Assembly (NCBI GenBank): GCA_023515725.1
Contig: JALDTO010000251.1
Location: forward strand, 248,001 to 312,000
Reading direction: 5' to 3'
Origin: Amoeboaphelidium protococcarum X5
Taxonomy: Eukaryota; Fungi; Aphelidiomycota
DNA length: 64,000 nt
In this document: positions 13,835 through 50,820 of the stretch, one piece after another
How the letters are laid out: every line of letters begins with the position of its first letter
Position numbering within the stretch: the stretch's first letter is position 1
Position numbers and translations under genes: made by a program
Notes under the pieces: generated by a model
Databases searched by the model: none
The model's input: the letters and a program-made list of their open reading frames with translations, nothing else
What the model was told of the DNA's origin: nothing

Positions 13835-14148
13835 TTCGTTGACATACTAAAAACTGACATTGATACTTGAAATTGAAGAGATTGAGAAAATACAGTATTT
13901 ATTACATTTACGGGCGTATATTTATTTTACTGTCAATTAATACCCCTTAGACTTTTTCAATTTGCGCGTAAATACAATTGTACTCTTATCTCCAAAATAC
14001 AAAAGTGGGGCGATCAATGTTTTCGCGAAGAATAAAACACGTCACGGGATTCAACAACTTTTCAAATCAAAGGAACTGGAGTAAAAACAAAGCTATAACA
14101 TCAAAAGTCAAAAATATGTCTAACCATATGGTAAAATTAAAAAGGAAA

Positions 14149-14221
14149 CGCCCAGTAGCGGGCTCGAACCGCTGACCTAATGATTAAGAGTCATTCGCTC
14201 TACCGACTGAGCCAACCGGGG
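14149..14221 (-). tRNA. tRNA-Lys(CTT)
   Basis: Cloverleaf CCCCGGT TG GCTC AGTCGGTA GAGC G AATGA CTCTTAA TCATT AGGTC AGCGG TTCGAGC CCGCT ACTGGGC G, followed by a TTTCCTTTTT Pol III terminator. C1:C72 mismatch. Confidence 0.9.
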
Positions 14222-14249
14222 TATTCAGGTATTTCCTTACTACGATGGA

Positions 14250-14547
14250 TGTTAGCACACGCGTCGATCAAGTATCAACAGAAGACTCTATGGGGCTTAG
14301 ATGATCAACATTGTTTCAAGTGCGCGCCTCTTTCATCAATTAGATCTCGAATAGGCAAGTATCTGCAGTATATATGCGCGCCTCTTATGAACATTGATTT
14401 CTTCCACTTAACGTGTTAATTAGAGTATTTATCTTATTAACATATTTTATCTTCCCGTATTTCTGTTAGTGTCTCTGCTTGACTCCTAGTCCTTGTATAT
14501 AACTTCCTGTCTGTTCCTATTGTGTATATAATCTGTCCTAAGTTAAA
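14250..14547 (+). repeat. 5' LTR
   Basis: TGTTAGCAC...CCTAAGTTAAA; matches the copies at 19301 and 19604. Confidence 0.95.
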
Positions 14548-14567
14548 ACTTAACACGTTCTGATATT

Positions 14568-15527
14568 ATGAGTGGTTCTGGTTCCTAAACTCCTGCCGTT
14601 GATGTTAATCAGTTGATGTTGATTAATCAACAACTCCAGTAACAGATACAATATTTATCTGATTAAATGCAATAATTGTAAACGCATGTTGCTTAGACCG
14701 CTGTGCCGCCTGCTATACCTCTGGTCGCCCCGACTTCATAGAAGAAGCAAATAATATATCCTGAAAAGTTTGATGGATCTGTGTCGGAGTTCCGTTCGTT
14801 TGTAAATTAGTGCTAACTCATGTTTGAGTTACATCCGGACGCCTTTGCCACTGACGACATTAAGATTAAGACTGTTGGATCGCTTCTGACTAAGAAAGCC
14901 AGCAAGTACTACGACCCTATTATTGAGAATCCCTCTCAGTATAAAGAAGAGTTGAAGTCCTTTGACACCTTCATCGCGTGTTTCAAGGAGTGGTTGTGTC
15001 CAGCTAGCCAAAGAGACTGCGATGAGAAAGCTCTGAGAAGACTAAAGTAAGGCTCAATGACGGTTTCCGCCTATGCGGCAGAGTTTAGATTCCTGTCGTC
15101 TGGAATAGGGTGGAATGATATCTCGCTGAAGTCCGAATTTAAAGAAGGACTTAACAATGATGTACGCATAATGATGTTGTCCTCTGATGAGCCTAGTACA
15201 CTAAGTGATCTGGTGAAACTTGCAATCCGTTGTGGTGAACGAGTTGCTGACATGAAAGCTTTAAGCGGTGGTAGTAACTACTCTAAGAAGTAGTATTCAT
15301 CTGTCAGGTCTTCCTCCACTTAGTCGGCCTCTGCTTCTACCAATTCGTCTGCCTCTACTCCTGGCCCTCCTAATCCAGATAATATGGATATTGATCAAGT
15401 TAAGCGTGGGCCGTTGTCCGCAGAGGAGCGTCAGCGTCGTTTGTCTTAGAGACTGTGTCTATATTGTGGTGGCTCTGGTCATATCAAGGCTAATTGCTCG
15501 TTATTGAATACTCGTACTTAAGGATGA
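14568..15527 (+). CDS. gag: Retrotransposon Gag (capsid plus CCHC zinc knuckle)
   Basis: ATG 14568; PEKFDG, TVSAYAAEFRFL, PDNMDID, CLYCGGSGHIKANC; in-frame TGA at 15525-15527. Confidence 0.9.
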
Positions 15528-18500
15528 CTAACTGAGAAATATATTTTAAGTCTGAATTATGAGGTCTCTACTAAAATGATCCTTCCCACAGTCTTAAAAT
15601 ATGGAGCTAAAGAAATTTCTGTCCCTATGCTTTTAGATTCAGGCGCTGATAGTTGCTTTTTAGATGAAAGTTTAGTGGCCGAGTTCGAAATTCCTGTAGT
15701 GAAATGCAAGCGTAAAGTCTGTGTATCCTTTGCTGATGGTGACCGTAATACTAAGACCTTTATTACTCATCAAACTGTTCCGCTGTAAATGCATATAGCT
15801 AATCATATTGAGACGGTCACATTCTACGTTATAAAACTTGCTCAAAAGGGAATTATTGGTTTCTCATGGTTAAGAATGCATAATCCTGATATTGATTGGT
15901 CAGCTGTGACTGTAAAATTTGGTTCATAGTACTGTTTAACTAATTGCGTAACCTCGCCGGAGTTAATATCATTGTAGCCCGATTAAGTATCAGACCTCTA
16001 GTCCAGTTCCGTTAGTGATCTTTCTGTCTCTGCTGATCATAAGTCTGTCTCTGTCTCCGACCATGTCTCTGTTTCTACTGTTGCTGATAATAAGTCTGTC
16101 TCTGTCTCCGAACATGTCTCTGTTTCTACTGTTGTTGATTCTGTTTCTGATTCTAACTCTGCCTCTGTCTCTACTCTGCCTGTTACTTTAACTGAGTCTA
16201 CTACTATTAACGCTTCTACTTCTGTTTCTGACTCCATCTCTACTCCGCCTCTTGTTTGCATTAATGCCACTGTATTAGACATGTATTAGAAGGACGAAGA
16301 GAATACCATAATTCCAGGATTTGTCTATGAGGATGAAGATGGAATCATAAATTATCATTGCCTATCAGATATCATTCAAGAGTAGATTTGCTTAATGTAA
16401 AAGGATACTGAAATAAGTGATCCTGTTCTTCCTGACCAGATACAAGAGTTTGGCGATGTATTTATGAAGCAACAGCTGAATGAGCTTCCACCTCATCGTG
16501 AATAAGACTGCACTATAGATTTAGAGCCTGGGGCTAAACCTCCTGTTGGTAAGTTGTACAAACTGACTTAGGAAGAAGATGCTGTCATGCGCGACTGGCT
16601 GTAGAAGAATGTGGATCGTGGATTTATTCGCAAGAGTTAATCACCATATGGTGCTCCCTGCTTCTTCGTCCGTAAGGCTGAGTGGACATAGGATTCCAAG
16701 TTGCGTCTCTGCATGGACTATCGCGGTCTGAACAAGATCACTATCAAGAATCGGAATCCTCTACCTAACATTTCTGATCTATTCCGCTCTCTTTAAAAAG
16801 GAAAGTTGTTTACTGCATTGGACCTGGATGGTGCCTTTGAGCTTTTGCGTGTCAAAGCTGGTCATGAAGCTAAAACCGCATTTCTCACCAAGTATGGCTA
16901 GTACGAATTTCTGGTGATGCCCTTTGGATTGGCTAACGCTCCTGCTTAATTTCAAACATTCATGAATGATCTGTTTAAGAATTAGATTGGCAAATTTGTT
17001 GTGGTGTATCTGGATGACATTGTTGTATATACTGATGGTGATGAAGAGGAACATTGGTAACATGTACGCGAAGTTTTGTAGATTCTCCGTTGTAACAAGC
17101 TCTACTGCAAACTGTCAAAGTGCAAGTTTGCGTAATCCTCCACGTCTTTCCTAGGTTATATTCTTTCTAAAGATGGCATTCTCATGGATCCTAGAAAAGT
17201 CGAAGCTGTTACTCAATGGCCAACGCCAAAGAATGTAAAGGATGTGATGATGTTCCACGGCTTTGTGAATTTCTACCGTAAATTTATTCCGCACTTTGCA
17301 GATCTGACGCGTCCTCTGACTTAACTACTGAAGAAGGATGTTGCTTTTACTTGGGATGCTGAGAAGTAGCATGCATTTGATTCACTAAAGAAGATGTTTA
17401 ATAGTAATATTGTACTAAGTCATCCGGATGAAGAGAAGCCTTTCGTGGTCGAAGCAGATGCGTCTGATTATGGCATTGCTGGTGTATTGTCTTAGTAGTC
17501 TGACTCTGGAGAGTTCAAACCTGTCGCCTTCTATTCAAGATAACTCAATCCTGCTGAGCGTAATTATGAGATCTATGACAAGGAATTACTGGCAATTCAT
17601 CAATGCTTCAAAGAATGGCGCCACTTTCTGCAAGGTGGTAAGCATCAAGTAACAGTCTTGACTGATCATAAGAGTTTGCAATATTTTATGACCACAAAGC
17701 AACTGACAAGGAGATAGGCGCGATGGTCTCTATTCTTCTCTGAATTTGATTTTGTCTTGACACATCGTCCTGGTGCCAGAAATGGTAAAGCTGATCTGCT
17801 CTCTAGACGCTCAGATTATGCGGTTGACGAAGAGAAGTACAATTTCAGATGCTTGTTAGATCCTTCAAAGTTTGTGACTCCGTAAGAGTTGGATCTGTTT
17901 TCCATATCCTTTGACCAAGATCTGTAATGTCAGCTGATCAGAAGTGATGTGCTCAATAAGGAATTTGATGAAGAGCATGACTGGCCTCTGGTAATTGCGC
18001 ATTTCCTGTTGACGGACGAATGGCTGGATGTATCTAGTGACATATTGGACAAATGTAAGTAAGAGTGTCAACATTTCATCATGGTGCATGGAAAGTTGCA
18101 CAGAATTCTGGCTGATAATAGATCGAAGAGACCTTACTTGCTGAAGTCTGATAGAGATGCTCATATAGCTCGATTCCATGATGGGCTTGGTCATTTTAAG
18201 TATGATTCCATAGTTGATCTCATTGAACGCCGTTTCTGGTGGCCTGACATGCATGCCGACATCAAGTAGTATATTAAAGAGTGTGCGCAATGCTAACTTG
18301 ATGCTTCCAAGAATTAGTTCACGTAATAGACTCCTCTGCGTCCTATTCCTCCCGTTGCCCTCCCATTCGAGAGATGGGGTATCGACTTTGTTCAGGATCT
18401 GTAAACGACTAAATCTGGTAATAATCACATCATTACCGCCATTGATTACGCTACTCGTTGGGTGGTTGCTAAAGCTGTGAAGTTTAGAGATTCTGATACT

Positions 18501-19355
18501 GTTGCAGATTTCCTCTACAATGATATCTTTATGAATTACGGTGCACCTTATGAGATCTTGTCTGATAGAGCGAAGTCATTCTTAGCTGATGGTATAGCGA
18601 AATATGAAAGAATGCAAGGCGTTAGACCAATTGCTACTGCACCTTATCACCCTTAAACTAATGGTATGGTAGAGAGAATGCATTCTATGCTCAATCACGC
18701 GATAACTACTTTAACTAATGGGCGTCCGGAAAGATGGGACGAGTATCTGAAGCAGGCTTTGTTTGGAATACGCTGTCGAACTCATGCAGTGACCAAGAAG
18801 TCACCATTCTACATGCTTTATGGTGTGGAGCCTCGTTTACTAGGTGATTCACGTCCTCCTGAGTGCACTTTGCAGCCGTTGGATGAGATTGAATAACTTG
18901 AGGAGAAAGGAGAAATTATGGCAAGAACTTTTGAAGCTATGGGAGATTCCAGAGCTGCTGCATATGAGAGATCTAAGACTTAGGCTGAAAGTATGAGAAG
19001 ACGTCACAATCTTGATCCGAATGCTCCAGAATATTACTTCAAGATTGGTGATTGGGTCAAATTAAAGCATCATAGCATGAATAAGTTTGAGTTCGATTGG
19101 AAGGGACCATATCATGTTGTCGACGTTGGATTTCCCGGTACTTACTGGTTGATGTCACCTGATGGAACACGATTTGATGCTACAGTTAATGAAAGAGATC
19201 TTGCTCCTTTTCTGGCAGCTACTGAAAAGAATAAGGACTACTTTTATGATGGATCTTCAAGGAGTTCTGTGAATCAGCTGCCATTTAGAGAGGGGGGTAG
19301 TGTTAGCACACGCGTCGATCAAGTATCAACAGAAGACTCTATGGGGCTTAGATGA
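15528..19355 (+). CDS. pol: Retrotransposon Pol (protease, RT, RNase H, integrase), same frame as gag
   Basis: LLDSGA (PR); [26 protein letters not shown] (RT); [17 protein letters not shown] (RH); HDGLGH...CAQC, WGIDFV, ILSDRA, YHPQTNGMVER, WKGPY (IN). Stop TGA lies inside the 3' LTR. Confidence 0.92.
16032..16133 (+). repeat. 51-bp tandem duplication in the Ser/Val/Thr-rich PR-RT spacer
   Basis: Two units encoding [17 protein letters not shown] and [17 protein letters not shown]. Confidence 0.85.
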
Positions 19356-19598
19356 TCAACATTGTTTCAAGTGCGCGCCTCTTTCATCAATTAGATCTCG
19401 AATAGGCAAGTATCTGCAGTATATATGCGCGCCTCTTATGAACATTGATTTCTTCCACTTAACGTGTTAATTAGAGTATTTATCTTATTAACATATTTTA
19501 TCTTCCCGTATTTCTGTTAGTGTCTCTGCTTGACTCCTAGTCCTTGTATATAACTTCCTGTCTGTTCCTATTGTGTATATAATCTGTCCTAAGTTAAA
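19301..19598 (+). repeat. 3' LTR
   Basis: Same sequence as the 5' LTR; preceded by the PPT. Confidence 0.95.
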
Positions 19599-19603
19599 AT
19601 GGA

Positions 19604-19901
19604 TGTTAGCACACGCGTCGATCAAGTATCAACAGAAGACTCTATGGGGCTTAGATGATCAACATTGTTTCAAGTGCGCGCCTCTTTCATCAATTAGATC
19701 TCGAATAGGCAAGTATCTGCAGTATATATGCGCGCCTCTTATGAACATTGATTTCTTCCACTTAACGTGTTAATTAGAGTATTTATCTTATTAACATATT
19801 TTATCTTCCCGTATTTCTGTTAGTGTCTCTGCTTGACTCCTAGTCCTTGTATATAACTTCCTGTCTGTTCCTATTGTGTATATAATCTGTCCTAAGTTAA
19901 A
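19604..19901 (+). repeat. Third, tandem solo LTR flanked by ATGGA on both sides
   Basis: Same LTR sequence; ATGGA at 19599-19603 and 19902-19906. Confidence 0.93.
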
Positions 19902-19908
19902 ATGGAGG

Positions 19909-20149
19909 TTCTACTTAGCACAGACTATATACGCAGTAGAAACAGACGGGACGCAATATGCAAAGATTGAGAGTCGAGCAGAGACAATAACAGAAGTACA
20001 GAAAGATAAAATGTGTTAATAAGATAAATACTCTATTAACACGTTAAGTGAAAGAAATCAATGTTCATAAGAGTCGCGCACTTGAAACAATGTTGAGCGC
20101 CACAGAGAGCCAGCTGTTGATACTTGATCGACGCTTGTGCTTGCTTACA
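19909..20149 (-). repeat. Degenerate solo LTR of a related family, inverted
   Basis: Reverse complement reads TGTAAG...gcgtcgatcaagtatcaacag...caacattgtttcaagtgcgcg...tcttatgaacattgatttc...cacttaacgtgttaa...gagtatttatcttattaac..., colinear with the young LTR but with substitutions and internal deletions. Confidence 0.88.
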
Positions 20150-45140: not shown

Positions 45141-48100
45141 TCATAAAGACGCGAGGGCATCGTTAATTTACTGCTTCAACATTAAACTGCTTTCTTACGA
45201 TAACGCTAACTAGAGCAATGTACGACATTGAGCAATCTATTCTTTCGACAGTTTAGATTGACCAATTGCCAGTAAGCCACGAATAACAGCGAGGGACTAC
45301 TCGCGCAAATTCAAGTGTTTGGAGTTGGTTAAATGCGCCTAAACGCTTTAAATCAACTTCATAATCATTGAGCCATCAAGTGCAGCTTTCAATCCACGAC
45401 TTACTTGCTTATTAATGTACTGCAAATGCTCAAAATGAGCATCCCATTTTAAGCTCGAATTCTACAGATCATTGCACAACAAGTTGACAACAGGCTCACT
45501 TTAGGCATCTCTCAATTCATAGCAAAGTAATGCAGCAGCGCATTTGAAAGCACATACGACTAAATCATTAAAACTGCTAGATTAAACGTCCATATCATCA
45601 CCATTAGCGCTCTGATTTTATTACTATTGAACACCAGCGCAAAGATTGATAACAAATGGAATAGAGTTTTAAGATAGCTTACCAGTAGAGAGACGCAACT
45701 AAAGACTTTAATACGCAGATGTACGGTATTGATATCCGCCACGCGAACATTCTTTCAACAACAATTACTCATAATCCTTTATTAGATGCATATTGGACAT
45801 AGAATCTACTTTATTCATCAATTAAGCAAGTGCGTGATGAAACTTTTCTTTGCCACTGAATATTGGACCAGAGAGATTACTAACTGTCAATTCAGTTAAA
45901 ATATTTACAGTGTCAGAATCTAATGCCTTTACTTACGTCAACAGTTGGGCAATCACAGAGCCAGCCTGAGCGCGCATATCCCACTTTGTGGTTGTGCCAG
46001 CTATTTTCAATATATCTACCAAATCAGGAGTGCAGCTATTCAGAGCTCCTTCAACAGAAACAGATTAATCATTCCAAATTTATTTATATAGCTGAGAAGT
46101 TTCTGAATGAGCATCTCCCATTCCAAAGTAAGTCAAAGCAGTTAGAAGGGGATGCGATTAGACACTGACGGAGGAGTGTTTAGATATCTCCAAAATGCAT
46201 AGAGACGCACCATGCTTGCTTGGAGTAGAATCACGCTCTACATACAACGTCTTCAGATGCTTTACAAATTTCTGTTATACGTCCAGTGAGCAATACTTGA
46301 ATATGTAGCCGACACAAACCGCCACTGATTATCTAACAATCTCATCACCATCTCCAACTGTACCACTCAGGGCTTTCAACAGTGTGTCTAGAGAAGACTC
46401 GTGTTATTTAACAATATTCTGATGCTTCAACACAATGAACTGAATGATCCTAAATGTTCCAACTTTAGTTGGTAGCCCCACGCCACGTCTGACAAGATCA
46501 GACAACTTTACAAAGACCTCGTCCACATTATCATGTGATAATGCACCAGCAGCGCACTACTCAATGATGTCCATGAGAGACGATTATTTGACGGCACTAG
46601 ATCTTGCCTAATTCAACTGCTACTCAGTAATACCATACTTTTCAGTGTGGAAAGAGAGATAATTCACCTATTATGGTTCAAGTTCAGTCAATTTGGATAC
46701 CAGCAAATATATAATCTCGGCACAGTATTGACTGAGAAGTGGTGACACTTACTTGCAGAGCTAACGCAGAGCATCTAAGCAAACTTTTTAAGCATCTGCA
46801 GAGTAATTATGAGCCAGAGCTTTGAGCAGAAATGGAAGCAAAAGATTAATCAGCCTTTACTTTTCACTGAGCGAGACAGCTTCATCACATATCTGCTTGA
46901 CGCAGACATTAAGCAGACACTTCAATATTCCAAAAGCCGCAACTCGAACACTTTCCTTATCATCCTCTAAACTAACAAGACACCTAGACCAAATTTGATT
47001 TAAGTACGGAGAGAACGAGTCAACAGAATGCATCATTAACAAATCTTGTACTGCATACGCTGAAGCTTCTCTTTGTCGCCAAGAGTCACTTTAAAGACCA
47101 TGAACCACAAACTTGACAACATCAGAGAAGTATTACTAAGTAATTTTTTGCTTGCTTTCAAACAGATTATTCCACAAACGCTTCATTGCCTACTTCACCA
47201 AATTATTCGCATCAAAAGACATACAGTATAATTTCGGAACCAACTGAGACTAGTTGCTCAGTAAACGCATTCGACTTTGATTTAGCATCTATCCAACTAA
47301 CAAGGAGGAGCTCAGATTGGATTGTAGGCTCAAAGGATCACTTGATAAAGCAGCCAAGTCAAAGAATAGATTGGACGCCTGAACATCAAGAGAAAACTGC
47401 AATAGCTCTCTTATCACCATCAACGATGAAGTTTTAAGTTCAAACTTGGACAACTTACTAACTAGTGGACTAGAATGATCCGCAGTCTTGGTAAGCAGAT
47501 TTTGAATTTAACCAAGAAGATCAGATTAAGCAGATGAATCCATAACATTTGCATGCAAAAGAGCTATGCCTAATAATGATAAATCTGCCAAATCTCTTAT
47601 ACAACCCAAATGAAGCAGCGATTGCAGTAACTCGATTGATAACTCATATAAAATTTGCCTAGGAGCGAAACGAGCAAATGCAAGCATAAAAATAAGCATA
47701 GGCCGCTTAATGGCTGCAGGGGACGACTCGCTGGTGATGTGCTGATCAAGAATTTTTACCACTTGAGATTTTACAGCCTCGCCATCCTCATTTTCGCCCC
47801 GCCAAGATTTAGGAATCAGAGCATCACCCATTTCATTGCAGTAAATTAAATACTATTGAACTTGCCTAGATTGTTGACCAAAAAGAGCAGTGATCATCAC
47901 GCAAGACCACTTGTATAACAAATCATCATCTTTATTCCACTGGCTTACAATTTTTAAAGTCTCTTCCACCACTTTAAGGGCCACATCGGATCTAATGAGG
48001 CATACTGATAACAACAAATCAAACTGAGCATTCAATAAAGCAACATTGGTTGATACTTTCAACTGAGATAATATAGCGTCCACGGTTTCATTGACGGTAG

Positions 48101-50522
48101 CAATATCGTCTTCATCAATCCCATATCGCCAAAACTCTGCCAACAAAATGATATCGTCAGCACTATCAAGCGATTTCACGTTACCTGTCAGACGCTTAAC
48201 AGTGGACTACAGCACTTGACCATATTTCACAGACAACTAGTCAACACCATATAGATACGCAAAATTACGCAGTGTAAAAACTTACGTTTTTTCAGAAACT
48301 TGAGCATTATTTGACATGCTTTAAAAGTAATCAATACCTTACACGGCAACTATATAGGCAACACATTAGGACAATTTGGTGCATATCAGAGCATTAGATT
48401 TAAATTTACGCTCAACATTTAATAACGTGTCAACAATCTCTATAGGCATAGGTAATGGCTTTCCATTACATAATTATAGCAGCAGTAAAAAACAATCTAA
48501 AACAGCGATAACGGCAGTACCACTGTGGCGCTCATCAATGGACGCTAAGATTTTAGAAACCAAATCCAGCACATTCTAAAATTACTGTTAGATGGTGGGA
48601 TTCTGATTAGAGTTAACTAGAGACCTCAGCCTTTGTATATCTTATTCATTTGACCACAAAGTGCTTAAACTCAAATCCTCCAGCAAAACACCCTCCTGCC
48701 CAAATAAACGTTAATTCATAACAACTTTCTTATCAATCATGTATAGCAAAAACCAGGTAACCATTAATGATGATTGTCCGACAGCTCTATGCTTAACAGT
48801 TTCATTAATACCTTAACCGATACCTTGAGTAGTCAACTCATCATTACAATAAATTTGACTTAAAACTTTCAATACTGAAGGAACGTCGCACTTGATATTC
48901 AGAGTAAAGTTTAGAAAATGCTGAGAGATTTTCACAATTTCCGTGTTGTCATCCGCAGTTCCCGCAACACCAAGCAGATACTTCTTCTCGGATGTATCTT
49001 CAAACAATCGTTCAGCCAGTCGAAATGCACACAGTCTGACATCTTGATTCTCACTCATACAATATTTAATAGATACTATTTCCTATAGTTCCAGAGAATC
49101 CCCTATAATCTCAGATATTTACGAAATGGACAACATGATTTATTGCTTCAAATCCTTGTTAGCATCTCCTAAACGATCAAAGCAGAGCTAAATGAAATCC
49201 TGAATGCTTTTAGAATCAAGCAAGGATGTAGAACTACCCAATGAACCAATTTGAGCAATGATCTAAAATGCGAACCCAAGCAAATCTTCTTTAACTGCTG
49301 CAGAATCATCTTACAGTATACGCATAGCCATTTGATAAATACTTTACAATACGGCCGAATCATCACAACAACTTACAAAGTGACGAGTGAAGGCAACTAT
49401 AGATTGAGCACCCTTCTAATTATCGCGCATAAGCCCATCATCCACTAGCATTTGGATAACATTCACTGCTAAAGGATACTATTCTTATGCAATTTGGAAT
49501 CGACACAATTCATTCATAAGTTTTACGAACAACTGATTGCTTATGCGGCAAAACGCTTCTTCAACTCCCTATGGCCTCTAAGCACACAGACTCAACATTT
49601 AACCATTGACCACTGAATAAGATTTCAATCTGGACAAATTCCTCTTTCTGTAATCTTCACATTTAGCTTAGATTTCATGATTTCCATCGATCGATCCGAT
49701 AACAGCAATAACATAGTTCATCTACTATGCAAGTAAAAGCTTTTCATTCATCATAGCGTTGTCATTTTCACCGTCTTAGAACTATATCTTAAATACATTG
49801 GACAAAAAATTCATCTTGAGAGTAGTCAAATGTTAATAAGATTGATCAATACCATTCGATCCTCCGTCAGTGATCAAGTCCACATCACCTTTAGTTAATC
49901 CATCAGGTTATCTTGAAATCTCCAACTGTTAGCCTTGAGAATTCAAAAGACCCCTCATCGACGGATTTAAAGTCATTTGCTAAATAGATGGTACTCTAAC
50001 CTTGTAATACATGATAAACATAATCTGCCATTTAAATAGTAGCTCCAAATCATTGACTCCGACAGCATGATCTCCCTCGAATAGAGCCAATAGTTCCACA
50101 TAAGAATCAGAGCATAGAGTATGCAATACTACTATCCTGAACAGCCGATTAAGCAGAGAGATATCTACAGAAGATAGGCCTGAAACGAGCATAGGCAATA
50201 ATTTTTACTTGAGAGCCATGTCAGGCACTCTATTCCATCCAATATCCACAAATAACAGACTGATACTCTTCAACAGCAAAGATCTGCCTTTTGCATATAG
50301 CTGAACCAATTGTCCCAAAGGCAGAGTTACACTGTCATTAAGTCTGGCTTTTAAATGATCAACAATAACAATAACTTTATCCCTGACAGCTTAATCTTCA
50401 GAATCCAACTTCAAGAGCATAGCAGCCAGAAACTAATTAACGCAAATCTAGAGCTTCTCATTCGAATCAGCCAGAGCAAACTTGAACTCTACTTGTTCTA
50501 ACAACGAAAGATCTGCAGACAT
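45141..50522 (-). CDS. ECM29: Proteasome adaptor ECM29 (HEAT repeats)
   Basis: N-terminus LLEQVEFKFALADSNEKLQICVNQFLAAMLLKL; LSFHTEKYG; GVGLPTKVG. ORF-track pieces share one frame. Confidence 0.85.
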
Positions 50523-50820
50523 ATTAAAAAGAAATCTGTATGATAGCTTGATAAATAACTTTTAGTTTAATAATAATCTAAACTAGATTGTCTATCAAAG
50601 CAGAGATTGTTGAGAAAGGAAGAAATGTGAAACGGAACGGGATGGTGACGGTCAGAGGCCTCGCTGGTTTAAAGTCAGTCTGAACGCGTCTCGGTTAGGA
50701 ATGTTAAGCTACCTGTTCTGAGCTGAAAAAGCTGCCACATGCAATTAAGATAAATGAACACTCGAGCTCAGATAGAAACTTGCAATGTCAGTGCGAAATT
50801 AGAACTGATGCAAAACAGAA

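Follow-up and report, generated by a model that had tools for sequence, protein, structure and literature searches.

A 64,000-nucleotide stretch of the genome of Amoeboaphelidium protococcarum X5 (contig JALDTO010000251.1, positions 248,001 to 312,000; hereafter the window, whose own coordinates are used below) carries, at 14250-19599, a complete and recently transposed Ty3/gypsy long terminal repeat (LTR) retrotransposon, in which UAA and UAG encode glutamine as they do in the host code. The gag and pol genes of this element share one reading frame, interrupted only by a single TGA, and we conclude that programmed, context-driven readthrough of this UGA very probably joins Gag to Pol. What is directly seen is the anatomy of the element, a stop and a context that are both conserved, copies that are intact and young, and a lack of alternatives at the sequence level; from these observations we infer readthrough itself, together with its efficiency and the amino acid inserted.

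In the mechanism that we propose, most ribosomes would terminate at the UGA at 15525 and release Gag, a product of 319 amino acids comprising capsid and nucleocapsid. In a minority of cases, a near-cognate transfer RNA (tRNA) would read the UGA, and translation would continue in the same frame to yield a Gag-Pol polyprotein of about 1,595 amino acids, which includes the protease, reverse transcriptase (RT), RNase H and integrase. Readthrough would in this way set the excess of Gag over Pol. The signal would be the short local context, namely, UGA followed by C (UGA-CUA in this element), and not a downstream pseudoknot, whereas the residue inserted at the UGA would be, by analogy, Trp, Cys or Arg.

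The host code and the stop between gag and pol

The code of A. protococcarum, in which both UAR codons (UAA and UAG) specify Gln, has been published (PMC5304391), and the assembly (23.6 Mb, 346 contigs) agrees with it. Full-length HSP70 matches in the genome contain between 4 and 18 TAG or TAA codons and zero TGA, and the same was found for the RT domains of both superfamilies of LTR elements, gypsy and copia, where TAA and TAG are present and TGA is absent. The absence of TGA from sequences so rich in TAA and TAG implies that it is no ordinary sense codon, and UGA is, as far as tested, the only stop of the host. A tRNA gene with a CUA anticodon, located beside one copy of the element (L010:1456-1529, minus strand) and labelled 'Pyl' by ARAGORN, presumably reads UAG as Gln. 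No tRNA-Sec was detected, RF01852 being without a match in the 23.6-Mb assembly, and no UCA anticodon occurs among the tRNA genes of the examined loci (14 ARAGORN calls, some of them double-counted in overlapping loci). An Rfam scan of 14000-20000 (E up to 1) returned only a tRNA and two sub-threshold miRNA-like matches, which we take as chance, and no selenocysteine insertion sequence (SECIS). Selenocysteine recoding of the UGA was rejected on the grounds that there is neither a tRNA-Sec in the genome nor a SECIS in 14000-20000.

Translated under code 6, frame 0 is open from the ATG at 14568 to the TGA at 19353-19355, namely, 1,595 codons with a single internal TGA. It includes 52 in-frame TAA or TAG codons versus 36 CAA or CAG codons. 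Over the same span TGA occurs 44 and 99 times in the two remaining frames, so the open frame cannot be ascribed to chance. The internal TGA (15525..15527, plus strand), which is the proposed readthrough site, is embedded in the sequence ACT TAA GGA TGA CTA ACT GAG, and the base next to it, the C at 15528, belongs to the conserved context. It is located 9 codons past the CCHC knuckle of the nucleocapsid and 36 codons before the start of the DSG motif of the protease. Upstream of it, no in-frame heptamer of the type X_XXY_YYZ occurs within 90 nt in any of the four gypsy families described below, and at the junction of the window element the -1 frame is closed after at most 3 codons and the +1 frame after at most 9, with closure within a few codons in most families. 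Logan contigs from three independent studies (a 2013 biofilm metagenome, a 2025 sediment metagenome and a 2021 run of 'organism B') cross the junction with 15525-15530 unchanged.

These results bear out much of the preliminary description of this DNA, which had been made from the letters alone. Its account of gag and pol in one frame broken only by the sequence just given, of a TGA lying between the knuckle and the protease without a slippery site, and of UGA as the only stop agrees with our data, and its proposal of programmed readthrough gains support, at the level of sequence, from the conservation, context and intact copies presented in what follows. The further statement that all three canonical stops are read as sense in this mRNA is true, but only trivially, UAA and UAG being ordinary Gln codons.

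The window element belongs to a family, termed A, with a second full copy on another contig, beside a tRNA-Gln gene, and a third, partial copy; the two full copies are 7 mismatches and one 51-nt repeat unit apart. Its sister family B has three full copies and one partial copy. All five full copies contain exactly one internal TGA, at the same codon, and the rest of the 1,595-codon frame is intact. In the seven A and B junctions the stop reads TGA-CTA or TGA-CTC, and the flanks vary (TAA to CAA, GGA to GGG, CTA to CTC) yet TGA-C is constant, such that none of the sister copies has a sense codon at this place, which answers the conservation check proposed in the preliminary description. Between A and B, the gag-protease region shows a proportion of synonymous differences (pS) of about 0.75, that is, saturation, and a proportion of nonsynonymous differences (pN) of 0.16. 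Retention of the TGA despite such divergence indicates that it is held by selection. The ratio dN/dS is about 0.2 for the 16 codons past the stop and 0.08 for the protease, low values that are expected if the codons after the stop are translated in frame 0.

Six copies have LTR pairs without any difference, and target duplications of 4 bp are present; together with insertion next to different tRNA genes, these features give the copies the appearance of active elements. Identity between A and B is mosaic, with 91% in the LTRs and from RT to integrase (pS 0.27), and 73% in gag-protease (window 14250-19599 compared with L011, L012 and L013), which suggests recombination between old lineages.

Further families were obtained by an RVT_1 profile search of the genome, and TGA was kept as X in the alignments. 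At the nucleocapsid-protease boundary, gypsy family C has GAA TGA CGT and family D has CAA TGA CAG TTA, the latter a stop-CARYYA context. Thus, in families A to D, 11 out of 11 junctions (7 from A and B, and 4 from C and D) have TGA-C at this boundary. A peptide motif past the stop, [IL]L[SN]LN, is common to families C and D and to the A/B alignment. In families C and D, no ATG precedes the catalytic Asp of D[SC]GA on the stretch that follows the TGA, and where A and B encode Met at 15576, the alignment shows Phe for C and Ile for D. In the Pol tree, A to D form one clade (SH-aLRT 99), with A/B at about 0.7 substitutions per site from C/D. Since these families are a single clade, the TGA of the gypsy elements is, as read from this tree, one old event that has been retained.

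Outside relatives of this clade were sought with an integrase-core search of 1.84 billion protein representatives, and the DNA of four Pol-only matches, L033 to L036, was examined. They belong to the same Ty3/gypsy subgroup, with integrase cores of 55-65% identity (the three with a canonical slip site) or 59% (L033), and their gag is homologous, its CCHC knuckle lying immediately ahead of the junction. Unlike in families A to D, pol is in the -1 frame in all four, with no in-frame stop, and three further relatives (P0012, P0046 and P0079) are predicted fused gag-pol proteins. Slippery heptamers for -1 frameshifting, read in the frame of gag, immediately precede its stop, namely, G_GGA_AAC in L034 (1120-1160) and L035 (1010-1030) and A_AAA_AAC in L036 (330-360), in sources that comprise metagenomes and one NCBI assembly. 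L033, which is the sister of the clade A to D in the tree, also has pol in the -1 frame but lacks a canonical heptamer. Because the nearest outside relatives use -1 frameshifting, the aphelid clade seems to have replaced it by readthrough, as judged from a midpoint-rooted tree.

Single internal stops are also found among the copia elements of this genome, where six of the eight sampled families have exactly one internal in-frame TGA, bringing the count over both superfamilies to 10 of 13 sampled LTR families. Three copia families have the TGA at the gag-protease boundary (GAA TGA CTT, AAA TGA CGC and GAA TGA GAT). In three others (L025:3303, L027:3154 and L032:3206) it is located in the N-terminal HHCC domain of the integrase, flanked by the His pair on one side and the Cys pair on the other, where a recoding stop is unusual; the contexts are CCA TGA CTT, GTG TGA CTA G and TTA TGA CAA, and L027 has the full TGA-CTAG. 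The type of position is not monophyletic and the families are deeply diverged, in a six-row tree with long branches and no outgroup. For three copia families, a segment of 121 nt with the TGA at its centre recurs at 100% identity in four or five places of the genome, although some of these may be allelic contigs.

The base after the stop, or +4 base, sets the internal TGAs apart. It is C in nine out of ten internal TGAs and in none of the ten terminal TGAs of the same families (Fisher p = 1.2e-4), and if the internal TGAs are counted as five events it is C in four of them (p = 0.0045). As a background, C follows 20 of 111 long open reading frames (ORFs) unrelated to transposable elements, a rough estimate from TGA-bounded ORFs in about 290 kb, some of which are probably spurious.

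As a separate observation, the locus L018 (1755-7166) contains an ORF1 with a CCHC knuckle and an ORF2 with an RT. The two ORFs share one frame and are separated by a pair of in-frame TGAs at a spacing of 21 codons; the locus may represent a non-LTR element with double readthrough or with reinitiation.

Alternatives to readthrough

Four observations weigh against readthrough as we propose it. The ATG located 16 codons past the TGA, at 15576, is conserved in families A and B. A gypsy family, L021, known from a 2.8-kb contig, has the gag CCHC and the protease DSG in one frame with no stop at the boundary, and the elements of this genome can therefore do without one. Folding of the sequence past the stop (60 and 120 nt for A and B, 120 nt for C and D) gave nothing more stable than shuffled sequences, with z between -0.6 and +1.3 overall and -0.43, +1.30, -0.58 and +0.95 for the 120 nt of the four families, so that none of them has a significant RNA structure there; a downstream fold, which had been raised in the preliminary description, thus finds no support, and the efficiency of readthrough would have to rest on a very short context. 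Finally, RNA contigs (Logan, one metatranscriptome, X19) cover the element as five short patches, none of them over the junction, which leaves room for a spliced pol mRNA or for editing.

The first and last of these observations favour an arrangement in which no ribosome passes from Gag through the UGA and Pol is produced on its own, either by internal initiation or reinitiation at the ATG 15576, or with an mRNA that is spliced or subgenomic. Indeed, this ATG is about 20 residues before the catalytic Asp and would provide a workable N-terminus for the protease. However, with Phe or Ile at the aligned position and no ATG before the catalytic Asp in families C and D, Met 15576 is better seen as a hydrophobic residue of the protease than as a conserved initiator, and a pol start at this codon, which the preliminary description had named as a competing possibility, is not upheld. 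Moreover, the codons from the TGA to the ATG show the common peptide motif and the dN/dS of about 0.2 described above, and both the shared frame and the conserved +4 C would be purposeless if Pol were made separately. Tj1, an element of the same layout, likewise lacks an AUG for pol (PMC4600332). We consider a separately made Pol quite unlikely. It is very unlikely, too, that the host decodes an internal UGA efficiently as sense, whether with a dedicated tRNA or through a tie between termination and nearness to the mRNA 3' end, such that a single polyprotein is made and no ratio is set. Codes in which a codon is stop or sense depending on its position are known in other eukaryotes (PMC5304391; 10.1101/2022.04.12.488043), and the three copia families with the TGA inside the zinc-binding domain of integrase, an odd place for a terminator, would be easier to understand in these terms. 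Against this, conserved domains of the host and of RT are rich in TAA and TAG yet contain no TGA; each element has one TGA, at a functionally sensible boundary and with a +4 C that is absent from terminal TGAs; and neither a tRNA-Sec in the assembly nor a UCA anticodon in the examined loci was found.

The two remaining explanations are far less probable. That the TGA is a disabling nonsense mutation, in copies that are dead or mobilised in trans, draws on nothing beyond the bare presence of the stop, and it is hard to reconcile with the same codon in four families across saturated synonymous divergence, with a frame otherwise intact in five full copies, and with identical LTR pairs and target duplications; we regard it as highly improbable. 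An equally poor prospect is that ribosomes pass the stop by frameshifting or hopping. The -1 frameshifting of the nearest outside relatives, at GGGAAAC or AAAAAAC, speaks for it, but pol is here in the gag frame, no family has a heptamer within the 90 nt upstream, the -1 and +1 frames are soon closed in most families, and no matching take-off and landing codons exist around the stop. Programmed readthrough of the UGA is thus the explanation that we retain.

Element structure and insertion sites

The features of the element, all of which are on the plus strand, are those of a Ty3/gypsy (Metaviridae) retrotransposon, namely, LTRs, target duplication, primer-binding site and polypurine tract, with the domain order gag (CCHC), protease, RT, RNase H and integrase; in the tree the element groups with Ty3/gypsy polyproteins. 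The 5' LTR (14250..14548; 299 bp, TGTTAG...TTAAAA) was delimited by repeat search and boundary inspection. Gag (14568..15524; 319 codons under code 6, capsid and nucleocapsid) was identified by translation, zf-CCHC and blastp, and pol (15528..19355) is 1,275 codons long, not counting its terminal TGA (19353-19355), which is followed by T and is inside the 3' LTR. Pfam was run on the stop-free pieces of the frame, and it located the CCHC knuckle (zf-CCHC, 15456-15497), the protease with its DSG (Asp_protease_2, 15636-15644), RNase H (RT_RNaseH, about 17544-17714), and the zinc domain (Integrase_H2C2, about 18147-18266) and core (rve, 18405-18653) of the integrase. The RT (16695-17165) comes from the RVT_1 search of the genome (match at C249:264695-265165). 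The two longest stop-free pieces of gag gave no Pfam match, and the identity of gag comes from blastp against the gag of outside relatives (E of 3e-42 and 3e-38). No chromodomain was detected by Pfam in the stop-free pieces. A polypurine tract, AGAGAGGGGGGTAG (19287..19300, identified from the sequence), abuts the 3' LTR (19301..19599). The 3' end of the LTR is AA in family A and CA in families B, C and D.

Between the protease and the RT, at about 15990-16290, there is a repeat linker rich in Ser and Val. It consists of tandem units of 51 nt (17 amino acids) whose number varies among copies (window; L010:5504-5707). A 51-nt indel in this linker separates the two full copies of family A, and one metagenome contig 'goes back 102' at 16132>16031.

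The target-site duplication TGGA was read directly at 14246..14249 and again at 19600-19603 and 19903-19906. The third of these borders a further LTR (19604..19902), the solo remnant of a previous insertion at this position, with TGGA on either side, and the three 299-bp LTRs of the window are identical to one another. The order LTR, internal region, LTR, TGGA, LTR and the threefold TGGA indicate that the full-length element landed exactly on the site of an older insertion, now reduced to a solo LTR. A tRNA-Lys(CTT) gene (14149..14221, minus strand; ARAGORN; Rfam tRNA, 60.5 bits) faces the element, with 24 nt between its 5' end and the target-site duplication. In six out of nine copies the distance to the 5' end of a tRNA gene is about 9-30 bp, the genes being different ones, namely, Lys, Gln, Gly, Pro, Met and Gly (window, L010, L011, L012, L016 and L017), and the TGGA site of the window has been used twice. 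Insertions are targeted just upstream of tRNA genes.

No primer-binding site of the tRNA type was found; directly after the 5' LTR there is instead (C)TTAACACG[TA]T (window, L010-L014, L016 and L017). In the window element, the primer-binding site TTAACACGTT (14550..14559) has a 10-nt complement in the middle of the 5' LTR, AACGTGTTAA (14410-14419), which is the self-priming layout of Tf1 and Tj1. Such a mid-LTR complement measures 10 nt in families A, B and C and in one of the two copies of family D, and 8 nt in the other D copy. This suggests Tf1/Tj1-like self-priming in all four gypsy families.

Elsewhere in the window, at 45144-50594 on the minus strand, one frame runs for 1,817 codons without a TGA and presumably represents a large gene of the host.

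Known readthrough systems and the breadth of the proposed strategy

The closest known parallel is Tj1 of Schizosaccharomyces japonicus, where the TGA of gag is needed for transposition, activity being lost upon removal of the stop, and where integration occurs 5-11 bp upstream of tRNA genes (PMC4600332). The context GAA-TGA-CT is strictly conserved in Tj1, Tcry1 and Tosmo1-3, which are Ty3/gypsy elements of fission yeasts (PMC10085805). A comparison of layouts, based on published descriptions, shows that the window element resembles this group in its size of about 5 kb, its short LTRs, its gag and pol in one frame with a single TGA followed by CT, the absence of an obligatory AUG for pol, a primer-binding site whose layout suggests self-priming, and insertions that precede tRNA genes by between a few and about 25 bp. 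The differences are that the host of the present element reads UAA and UAG as Gln, leaving UGA as the only stop available; that the codon before the TGA is GGA or GGG in A and B, and GAA in the Tj1 group; that positions +5 and +6 vary among families (CTA, CTC, CGT and CAG); that target duplications are 4 bp here and 5 bp there; and that no chromodomain was detected here.

Further parallels are provided by viruses and by cellular genes. In a gammaretrovirus, Moloney murine leukaemia virus, gag and pol are also in one frame and split by one stop, with Gag-Pol as the minority product, but the stop is UAG and acts together with a downstream pseudoknot (PMC5009743), whereas the aphelid elements have UGA and no significant downstream structure in the four families. 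Readthrough directed by a short context is known for UGA-C in Sindbis virus, for UGA-CU in fungi and animals and for UGA-CUAG in mammals, as summarised in PMC10085805, and these systems, like UGA-CUA in family A and the full UGA-CUAG of the copia family L027, need no structure. They operate, however, in hosts with the standard code, where eRF1 reads all three stops, and an effect of the +4 C with the release factor of the present host is an assumption.

Our search of the literature combining Amoeboaphelidium and retrotransposon returned nothing. The mechanism as such is not new, since fission-yeast elements already use TGA-CT readthrough, and the novelty attributed to it in the preliminary description was overstated, for TGA-CT readthrough between gag and pol is documented in Tj1, Tcry1 and Tosmo1-3 (PMC10085805, PMC4600332). 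What is new is its probable occurrence in a host in which UAR encodes Gln, and its breadth, over 10 of 13 sampled LTR families from both gypsy and copia. Taken alone, the window element is an ordinary recoding device in a new host, which helps to annotate it as one gag-pol unit and not as two genes or a pseudogene.

It is tempting to speculate, with somewhat less than even confidence, that UGA-C readthrough is a general expression strategy of the LTR retrotransposons of this UAR=Gln host, acquired several times independently. If so, the gypsy families A to D would have switched from -1 frameshifting; in the deeply diverged copia families, the single TGA is found at three or more positions, one of them within the zinc-binding domain of integrase. 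This would point to a property of the host, namely, that termination at its sole stop is unusually tunable by the +4 base, perhaps as a side effect of a change in the release factor. The leakiness of termination in organisms of this kind has so far been approached only indirectly, for instance through the excess of tandem stop codons in ciliates in which UAR encodes Gln (PMC6879139), and the apparently repeated adoption of UGA-C fits the hints from that work of more readthrough in UGA-only organisms. Two superfamilies with repeated UGA-C offer a natural set of about ten contexts with which to address how leaky a sole stop codon is, and by what its leakiness is tuned, in a code-variant eukaryote.

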